DNA of 64,000 bases from Pelomyxa schiedti (lineage: Eukaryota; Protista; Evosea). Below the pieces are notes generated by a model, which saw only the letters and a list, made by a program, of their open reading frames with translations, did not search any database and was not told the DNA's origin. The stretch is taken from the NCBI GenBank assembly GCA_020536535.1, contig JAHLWZ010000448.1, positions 1-64,000 on the forward strand, in the 5' to 3' direction. Shown here one piece after another: positions 8,513-44,651 of the stretch. The translations under genes and the position numbers were made by a program. How positions within the stretch are numbered: the stretch's first letter is position 1; each line of letters opens with the position of its first letter.

Positions 8513-11139
8513 TTAGAAGAGGGCGAAAGGTTGGCCAACACTCTTCGAGACCCAAGGGGTTTGTTGGTACTTAGAAAGTCCTTGCACCATGACGATGACA
8601 CTGTCGACGAGATCGTTGAAGGAAGTGCCGGGCTTTGTTTGTTCCAAAACTACACAACGTGGTGAGATGAGTCCAAAGTATTGGAGCAGCTTTACCTTCC
8701 ATCAGGCATCCAGTGAAGAATCCGTGGTTTCTCCTGTTTGGCAGTTTACATTCGTCTCTTGTGAGCTTTCCTTTTCGTGTTCGTAAGCTGGTGCTAATAA
8801 AGAAAGAAAAAAACGAAAAGAAAACCTGGGCTTGTGGGATACAAAACAAAGCATCCATGTGGGAATTCTTCCTTTGCCAAGTCTAGCTTTCTTTTTGCTC
8901 CAAATCCCCGCATCTGGCCAATAAAAAATAAGTAAGGAGGAACAAGACAAGTAGAAGTGCTGCATACCCTCTCCTCATCCGTGTCATCTGATTGACGGCA
9001 AGCATCAAGGATGCAAATCACCATGTCCGAGTGTTTCTTCAATCCATCCAAAATGTCCCCAAGCATGGGTGCTCTGAACTTCAAAACATCAAAGTTTGTG
9101 CTGGTGAAAGCTGTTTCATCCTCAGTCATCATCAAGAAATTGTGCCCCTTCATTTGCCTCCCGTGCCCAGCAAAGAAAAACATGCTTGCAATCTGAACAG
9201 TGTCAGGAGTTGGTGAAGGGTGACTTGTACTGCGTTCCTTACCTTATTCTTGGCTTTCTTTGCAGCTTTCAGAGTTTCCTTGAATTTCTCGAGGTGACAA
9301 ACAAATTCCTGAAGTGAGGGAATATTTTTGAGGTGTGTCACTTCAAATTTGCACACTCCTTCAAGAAACTGAACCAGTGATTACATTGTTAAAGTGATGT
9401 AAAAAATTCAAGGAAGAAACCTGCGATAATTCTGCTGCATCATGGAGTGTGTTCTGCAATGGAGATTGGCAATAAGCTCCATTCCCAACAACAAAGGCGA
9501 AACACTTGAAATTTAAGTTATTTAGAGTGCTCGGAAGCCTTTCAGATGGCAGTGGTGAAGCAGGGGATATGCTGTTATTTGAGAGGGCTCGAATTTCTTC
9601 AATGATAAATTCTGCATCTCCGACAACTATTCCAAGGGCACACAGCTGGGCCACTGTGTAATTGGTAAGAGTTCTCCCACGTAATTTATTGGCCCTGATT
9701 ATGTCAATGCAAGGTTGCTCAACACCAACACCCGCAAGCCACTCACACACTTCATCCACACTAGCAGTTTGAAGCTGAAAACGAGTTCCCGTTCCCGTTT
9801 CAATGGAAGGTGTTGATGACTGCACAGTAGAAGGCTCATTCAGCATTACACTTCTGCACAGTGATGATGGATTTTGACATGCTGATGCTGCCTGTGTGGA
9901 AGCAATAGGATTAACGGGCGCTTCTATCGTTGCGGGAACGATTGCTGGTTCGACAATGGGTGTGCTTAGGGGGCGATGGGGTGCTGTTGGTTTGGGTTCA
10001 GCCCCTTCTGATGTCAAAAACGCGGTCGGGACTGTGACAGTCTTCGAGGTCAAAATGCCGTCCTCATATCTAACTTGAAACTTCATTCCAGTGCGTGGTT
10101 CAGACATGACACCTTCCCCATGAAGTACAGGGAAGAAGGAAGTTGTTTTTGTCTTGCGGCATATCCATGTGCACACTGTAACCGACTCAACTGCGGCAGC
10201 AGAGGATTCTGTTGGGACATGTGTTGGTTCACTTGGATGAGGGGATACATAATATTGAGTTACCACAGCAACCGGGTTTGCCGCATCAGGTTTATCTTCC
10301 ACCCAATGGCACTTGAGAGTGCGGCTTCCATCAACCCACGAGTACGTCATTTCCCCTTGCCTCCAGCCATTTCTGAAAGTGCCGGTAGTGCTGTATGCAC
10401 CACAATCGTCGGACGCAGGATACTCGAACGTAACACAGCCTTCCAGGGCGCCCTTGTTCCATTCGCCGCTGCACACGACGCCGTCGAGCCACCTGAGGGA
10501 GCCAGGCCCGTGCTTCTTGTCGGCGTCCCAGCGCCCGTCGTACACGGATCCGTCGGACGCGGACTTGTAGGTGCCCCTGCCGGACCTGTGGCCCCACTTC
10601 CACTCGCCGTCGTACACGCCGCCGTCCGACAGCGTCAGCACGCCGCTGCCGTGGCGCCGGTCTTCCTCCCACTCGCCGTCGTACACGGCGCCGTCGGGGG
10701 CGGTGTGGCGCCCGCGGCCGTGCATCTGGCCGTACTTCCACTCGCCGGTGTACGTGGAGCCGTCGCGGAACCGCCGCGTGCCGGCGCCGTGGAACCCGCC
10801 GCGCAGCCACGCGCCCTCGTACGAGGCGCCCGACGGCGGCGGCTGGGACTCGCAGCCAGTGCCGTCCGGGGCGTCGTCGCGCCACTCGCCGTCGTACACG
10901 GTGCCGTCCGACGAGCGCTGGACGCCGCGGCCGTCGCGCTTGCCGGCCCTCCAGTCCCCGGTGTAGGTGCCGCCGTTGGTGTACTTGAGCGTGCCGACGC
11001 CGTGGGGCTGCCCGTTGACCATCTGCCCGGTGTACGACCCAACGCTGGTCGTGGTTGTGGCGGTAGCGTCGCCGTCCAAGGGAGCGCGGGGGCCTTCGCC
11101 GTTCCCCTTGTTGTTACTGCCCCACAAGTACCTCCACAT
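8513..11139 (-). CDS. MORN repeat - SAM domain - caspase-like (peptidase C14, ortho/paracaspase-type) protein
   Basis: About 10 MORN repeats (YxGxWxxGxxHGxG). SAM-like SVDEVCEWLAGVGV...LGIVVGDAEFIIEEI. Caspase fold with AFVVGNGAY, FFFAGHG (catalytic His), ILDACR (catalytic Cys), YPTSPG...NHGFFTGCL and QQTPWVSKSVGQPFALF*. Confidence 0.85.
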
Positions 11140-19121: not shown

Positions 19122-22100
19122 TCAAAGGAAAGCTCCATCGGCCCACTGGGTGTAGTCCAGCCCTCCTTCCTTCTGTGGCATTACTCTGGCTAGGTATTCG
19201 GCTTGTGCCGGGGGCATGTTGGCCTGGAGTTCCGAGAGTGTGACTGTGTCCTTGTTGCCGGCAATGGCCCGGAAGGCGGCTACTATCTCGGCCTTGCTGT
19301 CAGTGTCTGTGCGGCGCCTCTTCATGAATGTGAGGAACTCGTCGAAGGAAATGGACTCGTTTCCGTCTGCATCAAACTCGGCTACGACTTTCTTAATTTC
19401 GTCATCACTGTGGGGTTGTCAGGAGGACACTGTGTAGAAGGCGATGGAAGTACAGTACCTCATTTCTTCCCCGAGTGCCTGTAGAATGCCTTTGAAGTGG
19501 AACCATTTGAGTTGCCCAGTCTTATCTTTGTCGAATTGTGAAAAGAGAGAGTGGCACTCCGCAAGTTCATCTGGTGACATTCCTCCATGCCTCTTAGCGT
19601 CAAGCTGTTGAGTAAGCAACTCGCGTCTTTTTTGCTGAAGGAAGATTAGTGTGGAAATTGTAAAGTGAGGTCAGGTACAAGCATTTGCTTCAACTGTGTA
19701 AGTTCACCCTTAAGTGACGACGCTGTGTGAGTACTGAGGGTACTGTCAGGGGTTACTGCTGAATCGACCATTTGCTTGTCCAGTGTGGTCAGGTCAACAA
19801 GAAGTGCTTCGCCTTTCTGGTTTACAGCTGCCTCTTGCCTGGTTATTTGGTCAAGTTGGGCTTCCAATTCACCACTTAGTGTGACCGAGTTTTCCTCAAG
19901 AACCCATCTGTTTGTTTGTCAGACGAGGGGAAAAAATTATATTGAGGTGCTCACCCATGGTATGCATTGGCCTTCTCTGCAAACGAAGCACGTAATTTTT
20001 GAGCTTCCTCCTGAACAGTCTTTTCCTTGGTCAACCACTGTTTCTTCGATTCCAAACCTCCTTCGACAGAACCCCAGTTTTCTGTCAACTTGGCATGTCT
20101 TGTGGCCGTATCACCACCATCAGCACCAATTTGAGAAACAAGTTCACCCAACTCAGTGAACAGCTTCTGCTTGTCAGGCAGGTCTCTTTCAATTGCAGAG
20201 ACTTGTTGCTCTTGTTCAATAACTTCCGGAACAGTATTGAACTTGGGGGTGTAGCCAATAACTTCTGTGGCATTTTCCAGCCACTGTGCCAGAGTATGCG
20301 CTCCATTGTGGTACTGGTTAACAAGCCCTTCCACTTTCTCTTTATGTGCCCACTCCCTCTCCCGCTCCAGCTTCCTCTCTTTCATTACTTTTTCTTGTGC
20401 GGTTGAGGCTAGTAAATTGGCCACAAAGGCTTCCAGTTTCTGTTGTTTTGCACGAAGAGTGGCTATGGTAAGTGGTGTGTGCTTGTTGTCAATTACACCC
20501 AGTTCTCGCCCTTGAGAATCAATGGCTTCACATTCGCTCAACAATGTGCGCTGGGACTCCCCTCCCGCATAGGTTGAGGTTATGATGTTTGCTTTTTCAT
20601 CTGGTTCTCCGGTTACAGCCTCCAAGGCCTTTGTCAATGCTTCGACACTGTTTACATATTTCCCCACTGCTTCTGCAAATGAAACACGGGAAGCTTCCAT
20701 GGCTTGTTGGTGCTCCACTTCATGTTCATACGAAACAGTTCTTTTTTCAATAGCTTGAGTCACTAAGCCTAACATAACATTGGCATCCTTATCCCCAATA
20801 AGGGTGTGAACGTTGTCAGTTATGCCACTCGCTTGTATCTTGGCCCACAGGTCATCAAAGGCTTTCTTCCTTGTCTGGGCCTCTGACAAAATTTGACCAT
20901 CATCAGTTTCTTTACTGGCTTTGTAGGCAAGAACGGCATCGAGAGTTGAACCAAAAGCAAACTGGCTCACTTTATCTACCATTGAGCGTGTCCAGCGATC
21001 GAATTCGGTGGCTAAGCGTGAAAATTCCACACGCAAGGCCTCTTTTTCGGTCTCCTTTAAAACAGCTTCCTTTAATAAGGCTTGCTTGGTAGCATGCAAC
21101 GGTTCAAGGGACTCCCAAATAGCGACAACTGAATCCAATGTGACTTTTACAGACTCTACATCACGGAAGTGTCCTTCCTCCAGCCCTTGATGCAGTTCCT
21201 TCAGTTTCTCGACTCTGGATTTACTTTGATCATACTCCACGGCATAGGCAGAGAGCAAGTCAACTTGAATCTGAGCAGAAATGACTGTACCCACATCTTC
21301 TTCTTTCTTAAGATACGCTTCCTTGGTCTCACACCAAGCACGCAAGTCATTGGATTTCAGAGTGAAGTCCTTGAATAGCCCACTCAGTTTCTCTTGCCTC
21401 TTCAGCTCCGTAACAAGAGCTTCTTCACGGGATTTTTCTTCTTTATTGAGCTGTTCAAATTGTTGGTCAATGGCTTCAAGAGTATGCTCTGGAGCAGGCT
21501 GGAACTTTGGCCGCTTGTGCTTGGAAGCCTCAAGCATCTGTACAACTTTATTGTGTGCCGTGGTTAGTGTACCACGCTCCACAACTTTTGGGGGCTTGGT
21601 AGCTGACCTCCACTCGGTAAATTGCCTCATTTTGCCCTGTGAAACATTAAACTCACCAAAACGTGAAGAATGGAGACATACTTGTGCTCCAACTAGAGTG
21701 TTGTCAAAGTTCCTGTCCTCCAAGTCTCGAGTGGTAGTTGTTAACCAAGAATTTAGCTTGGCAGCTTTGGCAGCATATGCCTCCTTCTCTTTCTTCTCAA
21801 TTTCAAGTTCATTCATAAAATCAATGACAAACTTGCGGTAGTCCGCTACCGCAGCAGTTAACGACTGTACGGTGTGTTTTGTGTACTGCTCATTGTAAGC
21901 TTTTTGTCAAAAAAAAGGGGGAGCGGGGGGAGACCGAACCTTGTTTTCAGAAATTTCCATTGCAAGGCACTGTGAGTGAACAGACTCCGCAGCTTTGAGT
22001 AATTCAGTTGCCTCAACACCATCTTTAAACCTTGTCTTCAGATCATCAGTCAGTGGTTCTGGCTCTCCCGTCATATCCCCCATTGCGGTCAATTCTGACT

Positions 22101-25100
22101 CCAGGAAGTGGATCAGTGCTTCAGCTGCCGCTGCAAACTCCTTTCGCTTTGCTTCCATGGCTTCTTGGTGGGCTAACTCCTTAGCGTATTTCTCATGTCT
22201 GTCATCAATCTCATGTTGAAGCTGGGCGAACATGTCATCTATATCCTTATTGGATATATTGGTATGAACATTGTCAGTCACTTTCATTTCCTCCATTTTC
22301 TGTATCTTCTTTCCAATTGCTTCCTTCCTGTCTGTTGCTTCTTTCAAAAGAACTTCGTCTTCCTTTGTCATATCCTCTTTGTATTTTACCACTGCTTCAA
22401 GATTGTTCCCAAAATCACTTGCGCTAATTTTATTATTCATAGCCGTAATTCTCTCACTGAATTCCTTAGCCATAAGGGCAAAGTCCATCCTCAGTTCCTC
22501 CTTTTCTTGTTCCCTCTTTAGAATTTCCTTGAGTTTTTCCATTTTTTCCACTTTTTGTTTCTCCAGCTGTATCCAGAGTGCATCGACTTCACTCATTCTT
22601 TTAGTAACATCCTGTTTGCCGTTAACTCACTGGAAGGAAGAAGAAAGCTATTGCTTACTTCAGCTTTGCAGTAATTATCACCAATGATCGAATCGTGGAG
22701 AGCGTGGAGTTCAGCATTTTTTGTGAGGGAGACTTTATGTTCCTCTTCATAGTTTTGCAGTAGTTGAAGCTGGATTTGAGCTGCAACAAGTGTATCAACA
22801 GGCTCTTCAGCAACGAGGTAGGCCGATTTACTCTCGCCCCAAGATACCTGTGCGTTGCACTCTTCAAAGAACTTTTTCTGAAGACTGTGCAACTTTTCTT
22901 GCCTAATGAAACTGAGTTAAAACAAATACGATAGTCAAATCAAATTGACCGTCTCAATTCGGCAGCAAGGTAATCCTCTCTGGCTTTTTCAGTCTCCTCC
23001 AATTTGTTCCAAAGGGTTACAATATCGTTTGGTGCAAGACCCTCAGGAGGCACAAAAACGGGTCTATGGTGAGGGCTTTCCTCAAGAAGACGAACGATAG
23101 TTTTGTGCAGAGTAAGTAGAGCTTGTTTTTTGGAACTTTCAGTGGGTTTTTCACTGGATCTATAAGCTGCAAGTTGCTTGTGCAAGATCCTAACGCCTTG
23201 CAGAGTGTTATCATACATCCAATTTTCAAGCTGAGTTATCGTTTCGGTAACCCATTTCACAAGCTGTCTCGCATCAGATGTTAAATAGGAATGCGTTAGG
23301 TTACCTTGGCGGCGCGATCTGCGTAGTCAATTTTTCTATTCTTCTCATCTGTGAGTCTCTGCAGGAAGTTCTTTACCCACACGTTGAGGGCAGTTGATTC
23401 ACCGGACAAGCTCACAACAGTATGAGTGGTATACTTGTTGGAAGTGATTTGCATGGCAAGTTCTTCAGAAAACAATTTCTGCAGAGCTTCCAGTTTTTCT
23501 TGTTGGGGTTTGCCGTCTTGCCAAATTTCGTTGATTTGGACTTGAAGTGGTTCAGGATCGCCTTTAAGTGGGTGAGATAAGAGGGCCAATTAAGAAGGTA
23601 TTTAACCATTGAGAGCATCTATTTTAGAACGCTGAGAGTCCAAGAACTCTTTGAAAGCTACAGTAGCATTTGCAAATTCTATTCTCTTTGCTTCCATCGC
23701 CTTCTGGCGGTCAAGTTCCTGTGTATATTTCTCCTTTCGGTCTTTAATCTCACTTTGAAGTTGTTGGAACATCTCCTCGATATCCGATAGAGAGAAGTTT
23801 GTGTGCACATTGTCAGTAACATCTAGCGTTTTCATTTGTGAAACTTTGTTGACTATAGCCTCTTTTTTTTCATTTGCTTCTTTCATCCAAGCTTCGTCTT
23901 CCTTATCCAAGGTTTCCTGATACTTAACAACATCTTCAAGAGTTTCGCCGAAGGCTGACGCTCTAGCCTTATTGCACAATGCGGTAGTTCGTTCACTAAA
24001 TTCTTTTGCCATACTGGCAAAGTCAACCCTCAAGTCTTCTTTCTCCTGCTCCCTTCGTAAATCTTCTTTAACTTTTAACAGCCTTTCAGCTTTCCGTGAG
24101 TCGAGGTCTGACCATAACTTGTCTACTTCTTGCATTCTTTGCTTGACTTCCTGCGTTCGAATTAATTAACTGACTGAAGCAGGGTGGTTATCACCTCAGA
24201 CTTGCAGTAATTGTCGTTAATAAGCTCATCATGCAGTTCGTGAAGGCCAGACACACGTGGGCCGGAGCTTCTGTGCTCCTCTTCATAAGTTTCAAGTAAA
24301 TCAACTTGAATTTGGGCAGCAACAAGAGTATCAACTTTCTCCTCAGTAGTCAAAAATTTCATTTTGTTCTCCCCCCAGGAGAGCAATTCTGAGGACTCTT
24401 CGAAAAACTGCTTTTGTGCTGCATGCAATTTCTCCTGCCTTAGGGGAATTAATAAGTGCATAATGGACGTAAAAGTAAACCTCTGAAGTTCCTTGGTTAT
24501 GAAATCCTCCCTAGATTTCTCTGCTTCTTCCAGCTTAGTCCACAGTGTTATTATGTCTGCAGGGGTTGACCCTTCAGGTGGAACAAAGGCAGGCCTGTGG
24601 TGTGGACTTTCCTCCAATGTGCGTACAATATTTTTATGAAGAGTCAATACAGCTTCCTTTTCAGCACTTTTTGGAGGCTTTTCGCTTGCCCTGTAAGCCT
24701 CTAACTCTTTGGAGAGAGTTTGAGCACCTGGGAGGGTATTGTCTATTGTTCGTTCTGCAAGCTTTTCAATCGTATCTTTCATCCACTTGGAAATCTATTT
24801 GGAAAAAGTTATTTGATGAATGTTCTTAAAAGCTCTGACCTTAGCAACTCGCTCAAGATATTCCGATTTCCTTTTCTTTTCTTCTTCCAGGCGCAGTAAG
24901 TAATTTTTTACCCAAGTATTGAGACTTGTTGATTCGCCTGCCAATGCCACTGTTGTATGTGTGGTATATTTATTGGATGTAATTTGCATTGTCAACTCTT
25001 CACTGTAGAGCTTTCGTAAAGCATCCAACAGCACTTGTTGAGGGGCACCCTCTTGCCATACAGTAGCTACCGAGGTTGCTAGTTCAGTTGGTTCACCATT

Positions 25101-28100
25101 CAAAGAATCTATTTCTGATCGTTGAGAATCAAGGAATTCCTTTAGTTTCTGGGCGGCCTCAGCAAACTCTTTACGTTTCGCCTCCATAGCTTCCTGGCGA
25201 GTCAACTCTTTACCATATTTTTCCTGCCTTTCCCTTTGACCATCTCTAAGCTTCGTAAGAGCAGCATCAATGTCCGGCTTGGAAATTGAGGTGTGCGGGT
25301 TGTCTGTCACATGTAGCTCAGAAAGTTGTGATAAAGTCTTCTCGATTGCTAGTAATTTCTCATCCGCTTTGGCGTTGCAAGTGGTATCGTTTTCATCCAT
25401 TACTTGCTTGAAGTCTTGAACAGCTTCAAGAGTATCACCAAATGCAGAACGTTCAATATCACTGAGCTTAAGATTGGCCCATTGAATGAAGTCCTTGGCC
25501 TCTAGGGCAAATTCGAGTCTCAATTCCTCTTTGCGCTGTTCGGTTTTTAGATCTTCTTCAGCTTTCTTTTTCTTGGCTTCTTTTTGTTCCACCAGAGTCT
25601 TCCATTGTGCATCAATTTCAGCCAACTTCTGGGCCACTTCCTAAACTGGGTTATAAAACTTAGTTGACTGCTGTGTACCTCAATTTTATGAAAATTGTCT
25701 GCAGCCAAGGCATCATGAATTTTACGAAGAGACTCTATTCTCTTCAATGAACTTTCGTGCTCCTCTTCATACGATTGAAGTAAATGGACCTGGTTTTCAG
25801 CGGCTTCAAGGCTATCAATTGATTCAATTGTGCATAGATACTCTGACTTTTGTGAGCCCCACAAGGCAAGTTCAGTGGCTTCTTCAACAAATTCCCTGTG
25901 CAGAGCGTGCAATGACTCTTGTCTAGTAGTATTGTAAGCGAATTGGTGCAAAGGTATTGTCATACCTTGATAGCTCTGTCTTCAGGTATTGTTCTCGTGC
26001 TTTCTCTGAATCTTCTAATTTCCCCCAGAGTGCAGTTATATCATTGGGTGATGTTCCTTCAGCAGGAACAAATGCAGGGCGATGGTGGGGGCTCTCCTCA
26101 AGAGTTCGCACAATAGTTTTATGGAGAGTCAGAACAGCGTGCTTTTCAGCACTTTTTGGGGGCTTTTCGCTTGAACGATACCCCGAAAACTCCTTCAATT
26201 TCGTTTGAGCACCTGCAAGGGTATTTTCGCAGACGTGATCATCTAGTTTGGTGCAAGAGTCCTTGACCCAAGCTGTGAGCTAAAAAAAAAAAAGGAATGA
26301 GTTACTCTTTTATTGGAAAAGAGAAAATGTGGTACCTTTCCCGCTCTTTCTGCATAGTCAATCTTAAGGCTTCTCTCGTCAAGCAAGCTCAAAAGGAAAT
26401 TCTTAACCCACACATTGAAGCCAGTAGAATCCGCAGCAAGAGTCTGTGGAGTATGTGGGGTATACCTATTCGTTGTGATTTGCATTGCTAGTTCTTCAGC
26501 ATAAATCCGCTTGACGGTATCAAGTTGGATTTTCTGAGGGTTGCCCTCTTCCCAAATTTTATTGATCTCCTCTGAAAGAGGTTCTGGTTCACCTGAAAGT
26601 AGCACAGTTAGTGTGTGCTGAACGCACTCTAAGGTACCTGTAAGGGCATCAAGTGTGCTTTTTTGTGTATCGAGAAAATCTTTCATCTTCTGTGCAGCTG
26701 CTGCGAACTCCTTTCGTTTAGCTTCCATATCTTGCTGCCTCTTCAGCTCAGACGTGTAATATTCCTTGTATTTCCCAATAGCTTCTTCCATTTTTTGCTC
26801 TTGCAAATTAACATCCTCCAAGGTAAGCATGGTGTACTTGTTATCTTTTGCTCCTAGTTCAACAAGCTCCTTCATGAGGTCTTCTAGCTCTTGTTTCTTA
26901 CTGCTTGACGTTTCATGGTAATTTGACACATTTTTATTTAGCTGGTCTTCATACACCACAACCTCGTCCAGAGTATCCCCAAATACGGCATCAGCCATAC
27001 CCTGAATTGTATCATTGTACCACCGGTTCAGGGCCGTGATCTTCTCTGCAAAAGCTAACCTCAGCTTTTCCATCTTTGATTGTTTCTCCAAGCAGTCATT
27101 CAACCATTCCCTCTTTTGTTGGGAGGCTGTGCCTAGGTCAGCCCACTTGCCCTGAACTTCCGACAGTTGCTCCTGCACAATGGCGGCGTCTTTGTAGCCG
27201 AGAGAAACCATTTCATCAGCCAGATTTTTCAAGTCTTCCATCCGCGGCTTAGATGCTTCATACTGTTGGTCATGTCCATCCAAAAGCTTGAGCTGTAATT
27301 GAGCCGCAAGAAGAGTGTCAATGACTGGGCGTTCTTGTGCAAACTCAGTTTTTTCTTTCACCCATCTGGCCATTTTGGCTTGCTTGTCTTTCCAGCGCCT
27401 TGCCAATTCTTCAAGCTTCTCTTGTCTATTGAAATTAAAGGTGAGAAAATGAAAGGGTACTTTTACAAACCGACCGTGCAACTTCATCACGTATGGCTTT
27501 TTCCTTTGCAGTTTCAGCTTCTTGAAGTTCCACCCACTTAGCTGCTAATACTTCCAGACCAAGGCCTTCCGGCGGTACCCAAGCAGGCCTTTGGGCGTTT
27601 CGAAGTTTCACCTGAAGATTGGAAAGAAGTCCTTCAACAGCAAGTTTGTTTGCTGCCTTATCAGGTTTTTCGACTGCAAGATAGCACATCATTTTGTCCA
27701 TTTTATCTCTGGCTCCTTTTTGATATGTTACATTCACTTTATGTTGATGGAATGAAGCCTTCTAGAGTGTTATCAAAAGTATGGTCTCGCATTTCGGGAA
27801 TCTTGACATCAAGCCAGTTTATTAGCTCCTGAGCTTGATCAGTATACGCTTTCTTCATTTCATCATTTCCTTGTACAAGGTTCACAAGTTTACATATTCG
27901 TCGGGTGGCTACTTCATTCTGTCAGTACCATTAGGTAAGAAAAAAGTGAAGGAGAGAAGAACTGTAGCAGTAGCGGCAAATTTGTGAAAAAATTGTAGCA
28001 AGTATGTCATCACAGAACGCTCATCCGCCGAAACTGTGTTTTACAGTTACTATTTCCCTCAAATACCCAAGTAGCAACATACTAACATCTTCAGGATCAA

Positions 28101-29023
28101 AGAAACGGGGTATTCCAAGTTCCTTCTCAGCAACAGAAAAAGCAAGCTCTAAGTTAGGCAAAGCATTTTCTTTGTGGAGTTCGTCATATTCAATAACAGC
28201 TGGTCGGTGCCTGGAGAAAAATTAGGTTGACGGAGAACACACAACACAGACTTGTGAATCAGAGCACAAAACGCAAGGCCATCCTGCCAAGAGGTCGTGA
28301 AGTCTAAATGGATAAGGAAAAGTTGGGTTAAAGTAAAACACACTTGTTACATTAACATCACGGTATCCTGCCGTCTTCTTTTGGCACCAATAAAGAAGAC
28401 CCTCCTTGGCATTCATATCTGCAGGTGGTTGGTTCTATGTTTTTGCAAGATAAGCAGGGACACCTTCAACAGAGATATCTGCTATTTCGAATCGCAAAAT
28501 GATCATCCAGATCATTCCCAGTATAAGTTTGAGATCACCATTGACAATGTCTATTATTACTGTTGGAAAAAAAGCAATTGTATGTATGAAAGGAAACCTT
28601 CGCCAGAGATACCAGCAAGTTTTATACGAGAGGAAATAAAAGTAACGGATACATTAACATTTTCAATCATGTGAATTCTCATTTTAGGATTCTGGTTGAT
28701 CTTGGGCAATTTGGAGGCAGAGATAGACTCGAGTAGTTTGTGCAGGAGTTTACCGTCCTTATATCACTCTTAAAAACTTCTCACACGGAAAAAACAGGGA
28801 AAAAACCTTTAAGTCCTTAGTCAAGTCACTAATTTGTTCTTTGTGACCCGCTTTTTTCAAGTGTGCGTTGAACCATTTCGAAAAGGTCTAGCGTAAACAA
28901 ACAAACAAAAAAAAAAGAAAGAGCAAGCCCTCATTAACGACTAGAACTCAATAACAGTACGAAGATGAAAAGGAAGTGTACTCGGTGCTGGATGTCGATC
29001 CAAGATCGGTTATGCAACGACAT
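19122..29023 (-). CDS. Giant alpha-actinin-like actin cross-linker: CH-CH, ~22 spectrin repeats, EF-hands
   Basis: MSLHNRSWIDIQHR/TFSKWFNAHL (CH1), NAKEGLLYWCQKKTAGY...DFTTSWQDGLAFCALIH (CH2), a long rod of spectrin repeats, and a C-terminal calmodulin-like domain (FDKDKTGQL, FDADGNESISFDEF, GLDYTQW). Confidence 0.93.
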
Positions 29024-31374: not shown

Positions 31375-31538
31375 GAGAGGGTAGCGAAGATCGCCGGCCC
31401 TCAGCTGACCATAAATTGTGTACTAGGAATCCCCTTGCGGAGACCCATACCAGATATTTCGTCTCGAGTGCAACAGACAAAACATCCGACACACGCCACA
31501 CCCTTAGTGATCAGTGGGCATGAGTACCAGGTAAGTAT
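31375..31538 (-). ncRNA. U1: U1 snRNA (canonical 5' end)
   Basis: Reverse complement gives AUACUUACCUG; helix H GUACU/AGUAC; loop I GAUCACUAAG (U1-70K site); loop II UUGCACUC (U1A site); stem III with a GCAA loop; Sm site AAUUUAUGG; terminal stem IV. Length ~164 nt, with a DUSE-like element 62 nt upstream. Confidence 0.95.
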
Positions 31539-31592
31539 GAAAGAGTCTTCTGGTTGCTTCCGGCGTAATGCTTGGCAGTCCGTGCGGGACTA

Positions 31593-31616
31593 TTGTGGGA
31601 AGAAATTATCCCACAA
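31593..31616. promoter_or_regulatory. Bidirectional snRNA promoter core: two inverted TCCCACAA (DUSE-like) elements
   Basis: ttgtggga (31593-31600) and tcccacaa (31609-31616) begin 62 and 63 nt upstream of the two U1 starts. They match the Dictyostelium upstream sequence element WCCCAYAA in sequence and spacing. Confidence 0.88.
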
Positions 31617-31671
31617 TTCCGGGAATCCGGGGCCTCTTTGAAAAGCGCAACCTGAGTCAAATAAGTTCTTC

Positions 31672-31831
31672 ATACATACCTGACTGTGTACACCCTTGAT
31701 CACCAAGGAGTGGTGTGCTGTTGTGAAACTGTGCTTGCACTCTGCACAGAGTCATGGCATGGAGCCCCGAAAGGGGCCTCCAGCAGTGTAATTTTTGTTC
31801 AGAGGGGTTTGCGTATTCGCGCGAACTCCAT
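31672..31831 (+). ncRNA. U1: Variant U1 snRNA with altered splice-site recognition sequence (AUACAUACCUG)
   Basis: Helix H ACUG/CAGU; loop I GAUCACCAAG; stem II CUGUGC-UUGCACUCU-GCACAG; stem III GGAG-CCCC-GAAA-GGGG-C-CUCC; Sm site AAUUUUUG (31790-31797); stem IV GGGGUUUGCGU/GCGCGAACUCC. Length ~160 nt, with a DUSE-like element 63 nt upstream. Confidence 0.93.
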
Positions 31832-42781: not shown

Positions 42782-44602
42782 TCACTCATGGATATGGGTG
42801 CCTGTGAGGCGCCTGAGGAGTTGAAGTAAAAAGGGGTCCTCAGATATGTTCATGATGCAGGGTGAGTCGCTGCACAGCTCCGCAACAGATGGAGAGTACT
42901 TTTCCAGTAAAAACTTGACTACGGAGGTATGTGCGGAGCGGCAGGCACGGCGTATGCACGCTACTGCTTGCTGTTGGGCGATTTCAGAATAGTGAACTGA
43001 CAGCCACTTGACAGCTCCTATGTTTCCAAAGTGTGAGTATATTTCAAGAGGGGTTCCTTGGCGCTCTTCGGCGCCATCAAAGTCACGTCCAACGCTGAGC
43101 TGCAGGTCGCTGGCGGTAATGTAGGCCTTTTCTAGTAGCCATTTCAGTACGGCTACGTTTCCTTGGACACAAAACATGCGAAATGCTTTGTTTCTAGCAG
43201 CGTGAAGGCTAGATATAGGCTCAAGCTTGCCTTCCTCGAAAAGCCACTGCAGAAAAGGAAGTGGGTTCTTTTGGGAAGAACAAGCAATGGTGTGTAAAAT
43301 GTCACTTGGATCCATCGCCAGAGGGGGATACTTCGCAGTCACCCACTTGAGACTATCAATATCGGCACGGCTGCAAATCGTTTGTAGAGTGTATTGTAGT
43401 TCTGAGCGTACGGGGTCAAAGGGACCATATTTTCTCTCAAGATACTGAGCAATTTCCAAAAAACCTTCCAGGCTGCCCAGAAAAGAATTACAAACCGAGG
43501 GTGAATCAAGATCTGTTTTTTCGCATATTAACTTGACTGAATCGAAGTGCCCCTGCCGGCAAGCTGTAGACAACAGGGATCTGCGGGAACGAGGATAGGT
43601 ATCACAAAGCCACTCCACGAAATCGACTTGGCCTGTCTCAGCATATACCATAGAATGGTCTTTTGGTTCCCAGCTGCAATCATAATTGGCCGTGAGCCAC
43701 TTGGCCATTTTGCAACTTCCCGCTTGAAGAAGGGCGTGAATTACCCCCTCAATGCATGGTGATATGTCAGATTGCCTCACTTTAAACTGAGAGAAGAACC
43801 ACTCCACAAATTCAGGGTTCGCTGTCTTCAGCGCCGCCTTGACAAGAGTCCCCAGATGCTTGTTGATTTCAGGTTTGTCTCTTGTCAGTCCCCAAGAAGT
43901 TACTAGCCACTTAAATGCATCCACGTGACCATTCTCAAGGCTTCTCAATACATCGTCGCAGTCGTCCATACAGGCATGCTCTGCAGTAAACCCGAATTGT
44001 TCAACAAGAAACTTGCAGGCTTCCAACCGTCCTTTTCGGAAGGATTTGGCGAAGATTTCAGAGTATTCTCCTGTCACCAGTTCTCTCGAGACAGGGAACT
44101 TAGATAGAGCCCATTTCGCGTAATCCACATGGCCCTCTGTGCACGAGACTAGCAGAAGCCCGGCACCAAGTTTAGCGCCAAAAGGAGTTGACTCGACAGA
44201 ATAATGGGAAGCAAGCCACTCTGATAACCGTTTGCAACTGAAGCCAGCACAAAACAATAACGCTAATTCTATACTCCCATCAGTTAATGCCATTATTTTT
44301 TTCCCAACCAAAGATATCAACCTATTGTCAAGAATACAGATTAAGTCAGAAAGGGAAACCGATACCAAGTGGGTCTTGGTGCCTTCAAAAAAAAAGGGAA
44401 AAAAAGGGCAATACGGGAAAAAGGCTTCAGCGAGCTTCAAGAGTGTTTCTAAGTTTTCCTCATCCTCCCTTGAACCCAGGATCTCGGCATCCTGTGAGAT
44501 CCAAGGAATGAGACAAGTGTTAGGAGGCAGCGCTACGGTCCACAAGATCCTTGATGCCCAAACAACCCAGGCACTAGTTCCCGGTTCCGGTGCCCCCTCC
44601 AT
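42782..44602 (-). CDS. Degenerate ankyrin-like repeat protein (same family as 17085-18951)
   Basis: Repeats such as SCTEGHVDYAKWAL, ACRQGHFDSVKLI and FCVQGNVAVLKWLL; shares an EAxFP motif before an intron with the 17-19 kb gene. Confidence 0.75.
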   Translation of the reverse strand: MEGAPEPGTSAWVVWASRILWTVALPPNTCLIPWISQDAEILGSREDEENLETLLKLAEAFFPYCPFFPFFFEGTKTHLVSVSLSDLICILDNRLISLVGKKIMALTDGSIELALLFCAGFSCKRLSEWLASHYSVESTPFGAKLGAGLLLVSCTEGHVDYAKWALSKFPVSRELVTGEYSEIFAKSFRKGRLEACKFLVEQFGFTAEHACMDDCDDVLRSLENGHVDAFKWLVTSWGLTRDKPEINKHLGTLVKAALKTANPEFVEWFFSQFKVRQSDISPCIEGVIHALLQAGSCKMAKWLTANYDCSWEPKDHSMVYAETGQVDFVEWLCDTYPRSRRSLLSTACRQGHFDSVKLICEKTDLDSPSVCNSFLGSLEGFLEIAQYLERKYGPFDPVRSELQYTLQTICSRADIDSLKWVTAKYPPLAMDPSDILHTIACSSQKNPLPFLQWLFEEGKLEPISSLHAARNKAFRMFCVQGNVAVLKWLLEKAYITASDLQLSVGRDFDGAEERQGTPLEIYSHFGNIGAVKWLSVHYSEIAQQQAVACIRRACRSAHTSVVKFLLEKYSPSVAELCSDSPCIMNISEDPFLLQLLRRLTGTHIHE

Positions 44603-44651
44603 CACACTCGGCGGTTGAAATACCAAAAGACAGGATGATTAGATTCGGCAA

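Follow-up and report, generated by a model that had tools for sequence, protein, structure and literature searches.

In the pairing of U1 snRNA with a donor site, nt 5 of the RNA lies opposite intron position +4 (PMC10581693). The U1 arm is invariant in 227 yeasts, where a preference for +4U tracks the loss of METTL16 and SNRNP27K (PMC10581693), and in yeasts +4U donors are spliced although U1 itself has not changed (bioRxiv 10.1101/2022.06.08.495308; PMC10581693). Recoded arms have been accepted as U1 in two genera of amoebae: five Entamoeba species have one recoded U1 each, in which nt 4 and nt 5 are both A and match +3U/+4U donors, and Mastigamoeba balamuthi has a U1 with G at nt 5 that matches +4C (bioRxiv 10.1101/2022.06.08.495308). 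For Physarum polycephalum, candidates for a standard U1 and for a U1 with A at nt 5 were stated to coexist, in a short remark with data not shown (Roy and Bowser, bioRxiv 10.1101/2022.06.08.495308). The selection of variant snRNAs for particular splice sites has been described as an open question (PMC10228655), and in tunicates with non-canonical introns U1 duplication was not the route taken, according to a 2026 study (PMC13326754).

The window analyzed here is a stretch of 64,000 nucleotides from contig JAHLWZ010000448.1 of Pelomyxa schiedti. The published genome, for which seven cells were sequenced, has 52.4 Mb in 5337 scaffolds, one 18S gene, 8.6% duplicated BUSCOs and 149,016 introns (PMC8887013), and the assembly searched for this study comprised 52,367,397 bases in 5337 contigs. 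A sequence-only reading of the window had proposed two U1 genes pointing away from each other, 133 bp apart and each with every U1 hallmark, and this description was borne out. The Rfam U1 model RF00003 matched both loci above its gathering score of 69.5, with model positions 1-166 covered: a canonical gene on the minus strand (31375-31538, 75.2 bits) and a variant gene on the plus strand (31672-31831, 74.2 bits), with a divergent spacer of 133 bp (31539-31671) between the two 5' ends. A second model, R1, which was built from 18 U1 copies on other contigs with the window copies left out, gave 133 bits for the canonical gene and 133.4 bits for the variant. The window copies have the same fold as their paralogs, a four-way junction plus stem IV. 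The U1-70K-binding loop of stem-loop I (31698-31707 in the plus-strand gene, 31503-31512 in the minus-strand gene), the U1A-binding loop of stem-loop II (31735-31742 and 31466-31473, respectively) and the Sm site (31790-31797 and 31409-31417) were found in both window genes and in all 20 intact paralogs. The U11 snRNA model RF00548 had no matches within the window. Other predicted genes in the window encode a MORN-repeat plus SAM-domain protein (8516-11136, minus strand) and an ankyrin-repeat protein (42785-44626, minus strand).

Identity between the two window U1 genes is 51%, and nt 5 is the sole difference in nt 1-11: U at 31534 in the minus-strand gene, as in 8 of 8 intact genes of its class, and A at 31676 in the plus-strand gene, as in 10 of 10 of its class. 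The canonical arm, which pairs with +4A donors, is thus found in the minus-strand gene and not in the plus-strand gene, and this is what defines the variant. Because nt 5 faces +4 (PMC10581693), the A makes the plus-strand gene Watson-Crick complementary to +4U donors, as had been argued from the window alone. The classes are referred to below by the base at nt 5, as U5 (canonical), A5 and G5.

A genome-wide search in which nt 5 was catalogued gave at least 25 U1 matches with RF00003 and at least 27 with R1, and revealed three nt-5 classes. Twenty of the 27 matches are intact (8 U5, 10 A5 and 2 G5) and 7 are damaged. The G5 genes (C804:115512-115670 and C919:35771-35933) are both intact, unpaired and 91% identical to each other, and their arm would pair with +4C donors. 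No C5-class U1, the type fit for +4G, was found in the assembly. The earlier idea of a two-U1 system therefore stands in part: the U5 and A5 classes are real, but they belong to a set of at least three classes and about 20 intact genes rather than to a two-gene pair.

The intact A5 genes are on 10 different contigs, and this recurrence excludes a base-call error at A31676. A broader form of artefact, in which base-calling or a single-cell assembly of mixed species produced the classes, could draw on the derivation of the assembly from seven cells (PMC8887013) and on the unusual divergence of the U1 paralogs, which are 60-93% identical within a class. Such an artefact is hardly credible given that a single contig has U5 and A5 133 bp from each other, that there are seven intact cassettes of this kind with flanks that are not syntenic, that the genome has one 18S gene and 8.6% duplicated BUSCOs (PMC8887013), and that METTL16, SNRNP27K and U1-70K are single loci.

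A tree of the intact genes placed the canonical class in one clade (100/100) against A5 and G5. The plus-strand window gene clustered with the remaining A5 genes, and the G5 genes joined the A5 group by a long branch. Mean identity was 71-74% inside each of the two main classes and 53-58% across classes. Positions -50 to -4 were 29-32% identical among paralogs, with none of 47 columns invariant, while nt 1-11 were invariant inside each class and nt 5 was the only arm position that separated the classes. Since the spacers have been randomized and nt 1-11 have nevertheless stayed fixed per class, A5 cannot be put down to either sequencing error or neutral substitution.

The stems have also changed in a coordinated way. 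Helix H, whose 5' strand in the A5 window gene (31683-31687, plus strand) pairs with 31783-31787, has a sequence that is diagnostic of class through compensatory changes: five of five pairs were kept in 18 of 18 genes, and four of these pairs had two-sided changes between classes. Over the structure as a whole, 92% of cells were paired and 33 of 40 pairs had two-sided changes, a count reached by none of 500 shuffles in a test on 18 paralogs that left out the window copies and in which relatedness inflates the shuffle control. Judged from this pattern of conservation, the three nt-5 classes are under purifying selection. The suggestion of an old duplication with both copies selected is supported by the clade, by the compensatory stems and by the fixation of nt 1-11 next to randomized spacers.

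Intact head-to-head U5/A5 cassettes were found at seven loci: C448 (the window), C455, C290, C966, C171, C716 and C1082. Three further cassettes, on C22, C1151 and C918, include damaged members. The spacer was 131-152 bp in cassettes other than that of the window, with the exception of 43 bp in the damaged C918 pair. Cassette loci were alike over the cassette of approximately 470 bp and then similarity ended; flanks were in common only for C1151 and C171. In addition, the more two U5 members had diverged, the more their A5 partners tended to have diverged (rho 0.65, exact Mantel p 0.007). Similarity that ends at the cassette edges and correlated partner distances identify the cassette as the unit of duplication, and on this sequence evidence it has been copied around the genome as one unit. 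Head-to-head pairing is not a general property of snRNA genes in this genome, because none of the U2 and U6 loci examined had a divergent partner; the 33 U2 matches were on 33 different contigs.

Some further observations were made on the other snRNA genes. The U6 genes (approximately 20 matches) and the U2 genes are dispersed genome-wide. Among the top six U2 copies, identity is 93-99%, whereas U1 genes of one class are much less alike (60-93%). On C129, a U5 snRNA gene lies upstream of a U2 gene, in tandem on the minus strand.

Each window gene has a candidate promoter element of its own. In Dictyostelium, snRNA genes are preceded by an upstream sequence element, DUSE (PMC3188802), and a near-identical motif at about -63 was found here: at -62 of the canonical gene (31592-31600, minus strand) and at -63 of the A5 gene (31609-31617, plus strand), both assigned by motif likeness. 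Unlike the Dictyostelium arrangement, the window has two such elements, inverted and separated by 8 bp. Where the DUSE consensus has A/T the window copies have C, and most of the Pelomyxa paralogs match the consensus exactly. All 20 intact U1 genes have a DUSE-like motif between -59 and -65, and one is also present upstream of U2. The pair had been described as co-promoted, which does not appear to hold: with two inverted DUSE-like elements, one per gene, the spacer would contain two back-to-back promoters.

The damaged copies are of several kinds. Six of the seven are without stem-loop III, and the seventh, on C22, has an A5 arm and a canonical-type body. This copy (C22:72484-72641), one partner of a cassette, also has changes at nt 11 and in the loop of stem-loop II, and its branch in the tree is long; it may represent an independent U5-to-A change, or conversion from its neighbor, in a decaying gene. 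A decayed cassette family includes C1151:13642-15473, C918:63-385 and C3860:276-415, in which both members are without stem-loop III and have a G-to-A change at nt 11 in common; the C3860 copy is a damaged canonical-class gene. The C1151 locus has an additional inverted A5 copy and shares approximately 1.3 kb of flank with C171. In the C918 pair, promoter elements are absent from the 43-bp spacer.

The existence of seven damaged copies in the genome raises the question of whether the A5 and G5 genes as a whole have gone silent or become pseudogenes. This is very improbable. The 12 intact variant genes have promoter-like elements, protein-binding loops, Sm sites and compensatory stem evolution, and the damaged copies differ from them in having lost stem-loop III or changed nt 11, and are found in both main classes.

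Factors that bear on position +4 were present. A METTL16-like gene with the NPPF motif was kept, as was SNRNP27K including its methionine, each at a single locus, and the U6 ACAGAGA box was canonical. With all three present, the explanation of +4U that applies to yeasts is inapplicable to Pelomyxa. U1-70K was a single locus and there was a single locus with a strong U1C match, so the U1 classes probably use the same proteins. A weak second zf-U1 match (C808:91537-91638, 25.9 bits) is probably a matrin-type zinc finger protein and not a second U1C. A single U11 snRNA gene with a DUSE-like element (C820:10548-10683, 67.5 bits) fits the report of 90 minor introns in P. schiedti (PMC10639083).

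Donors were surveyed in 166 kb (0.3% of the genome) by means of a gene model trained on that same sequence, with +4 left unscored and introns predicted from DNA alone. A first gene model had been discarded as overfitted, with 42 introns. The model used predicted approximately 450 introns, or one per 370 bp, compared with one per 351 bp from the published figures, and its accuracy was uneven, an earlier pass having been about half right by eye at the METTL16 locus. Most of the predicted introns were 40-55 nt, with the branch point approximately 9-14 nt before the end. Predicted donors fell into two groups, one with exonic AG and a weak intron signal and the other with no AG, a strong +3 purine and +5 G; the same two-class pattern was described in PMC9803359.

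Among the 321 predicted donors with posterior ≥ 0.9, position +4 was A in 87, C in 74, G in 21 and U in 139 (27%, 23%, 7% and 43%, respectively; CI for U 38-49%), and the profile was similar within and beyond the window. Information at +4 was 0.02-0.03 bits, compared with about 0.5 at +3 and +5. The very degenerate donors noted on first reading were thus supported, with +4U the commonest type, to which the A5 arm change is complementary. The most frequent predicted donor hexamer was the match to A5 (16 donors), and the canonical match occurred 7 times. G at +4 was below background (6.5% vs 11%, p 0.003); in a fully neutral run, +7 was G-poor like +4 (7.4% vs 7.0%).

One gene allowed the predictions to be compared with homologs. 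In the spectrin-repeat gene at 19125-28679 (minus strand), 24 of 24 predicted introns had a junction offset of zero in at least two homologs in an exon-by-exon alignment, and +4 in these introns was U in 9, C in 7, A in 7 and G in 1. The predicted protein is approximately 2800 aa, the introns are 38-56 nt, exon lengths repeat as 85/104/81 aa, and there is one GC donor, at 27758.

The reading that we favor, and regard as moderately probable, is a mixed U1 pool whose classes each commit, by preference, the donors that match them at +4, with a graded division of labor. The major spliceosome would be supplied by a mix of U1 snRNPs with common proteins and three RNA classes distinguished by nt 5. 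U at this position would pair with +4A and wobble with G, A would pair with +4U, and G would pair with +4C and wobble with U. If each class favored its matching donors, though not exclusively, +4 would be nearly free to track intron base composition. The 0.46-kb divergent cassette, in which each gene would have its own DUSE-type promoter, would couple the U5 and A5 classes, and genome-wide copying of the cassette as a unit plausibly holds U5/A5 dosage in balance. We infer that the classes are expressed, are assembled into snRNPs, recognize donors in a class-specific manner and are balanced in dosage.

The correspondence between arms and donors is consistent with a mixed pool: the three nt-5 states match the three commonest +4 bases, and +4G, which is without a Watson-Crick partner class, is the lowest. 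Several observations count against it. Position +4 is near the intron background, and relaxed selection alone would yield the same result. The G deficit is modest and +7 is equally G-poor. G5 accounts for only 2 of the 20 intact genes, compared with approximately 23% of donors with +4C. Furthermore, the example of yeasts, whose U1 is unchanged, shows that +4U donors can be spliced without a U1 that matches them.

The main alternative, rather unlikely in our view, is that every class is expressed and works but that they are effectively interchangeable or specific to life stages, with the +4 mismatch tolerated, selection on +4 relaxed, and nt 5 kept fixed by something else, be it biogenesis, modification or a link to helix H. 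The flat +4 by itself cannot tell this from a mixed pool. Retention of the canonical arm in the 227 Saccharomycotina whatever their +4 preference (PMC10581693) agrees with interchangeability, and a promoter element for each gene makes separate regulation possible. On the other hand, nt 5 is the sole arm difference and is fixed per class despite saturated spacers, and in related amoebae the arm has changed in the same way, to match the donors there (bioRxiv 10.1101/2022.06.08.495308). Interchangeable classes would also leave unexplained that each of the three nt-5 states has its partner among the three commonest +4 bases, and that a C5 class for the rare +4G was not found.

U1 has non-splicing roles in animals, for example the suppression of premature polyadenylation and the masking of cryptic donors. 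If the variant classes had such a role in the U-rich short introns of Pelomyxa and the canonical class carried out splicing, A5 would bind the commonest GT-containing words of these introns. We consider this quite improbable, because A5 genes outnumber canonical genes (10 vs 8) and keep all splicing-related elements, and because the hexamer that matches A5 is the commonest among the predicted donors themselves.

The mixed pool suggests a route for the coevolution of U1 and donors that has no unfit intermediate: U1 is duplicated, the copies diversify, +4 is relaxed, and classes are then lost. This route could explain the recoded U1s of Mastigamoeba and of the pathogen Entamoeba. The Entamoeba arm is one change away from Pelomyxa A5 and the Mastigamoeba arm is the same as G5, and both may be what is left of an ancestral set. 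A link to Entamoeba, as foreseen from the window, is supported. In its full form, three co-expressed U1 classes would each handle their own +4 donors with U5/A5 dosage locked by the cassette, the set would be ancestral to Archamoebae and perhaps held in common with Physarum, and the recoded U1s of Mastigamoeba and Entamoeba would reflect differential loss and not independent invention. We put this forward tentatively and hold it to be doubtful as a whole. Scans of metagenomes for G5- or C5-type U1 gave no matches and then six, all by chance. Pelomyxa is a clean natural case, with abundant classes under purifying selection that differ at one reading base in a genome with 149,016 introns, and the predicted association of class with +4 base is therefore directly testable.

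Compared with the canonical U1 represented by RF00003, the Pelomyxa genes have the same four-helix junction, U1-70K and U1A loops, Sm site, stem IV and arm (nt 1-11) except for nt 5, which is found in three fixed states tied to three classes that are 53-58% identical to one another. Variant U1s of vertebrates are minor and heterogeneous, and many are degraded. Published work on vertebrates (for example PMC8457000 and PMC5786027) describes, as here, a multigene family with variants proposed for different splice sites; in Pelomyxa, in contrast, the variant class is the larger gene class and has one fixed change at the reading position. The route through METTL16 and SNRNP27K (PMC10581693, PMC9803359) concerns the same donor position, +4, but there U1 and U6 are unchanged and the factors were lost, whereas Pelomyxa has kept METTL16, SNRNP27K and the U6 ACAGAGA box and has diversified U1.

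The closest likenesses are with other amoebae. The A5-type arm of Physarum is the same as that of Pelomyxa and its commonest donor is likewise +4U, but a G5 class, a head-to-head cassette and an analysis of selection are not described there. Mastigamoeba and Entamoeba are reported to have a single replaced U1 per species and a shifted donor consensus. In place of a single replaced U1 and a homogeneous shifted consensus, a canonical class coexists in Pelomyxa with two recoded classes, and +4 is flat (approximately 0.03 bits). Our literature search, which did not extend to subscription journals, found no paper on Pelomyxa U1 or on a three-class or cassette-organized U1 set. The claim that no specificity-switched, co-promoted U1 pair had been described in amoebae is upheld for the cassette within that search and has to be narrowed for the arms, since recoded arms are known in Entamoeba and Mastigamoeba and coexisting candidates have been mentioned in Physarum. 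For amoebae there are precedents both for the A5 arm and for its occurrence alongside a standard U1; what appears to be new in Pelomyxa is donor-matched U1 recoding by a three-class family under selection whose U5/A5 cassette was duplicated as a whole.
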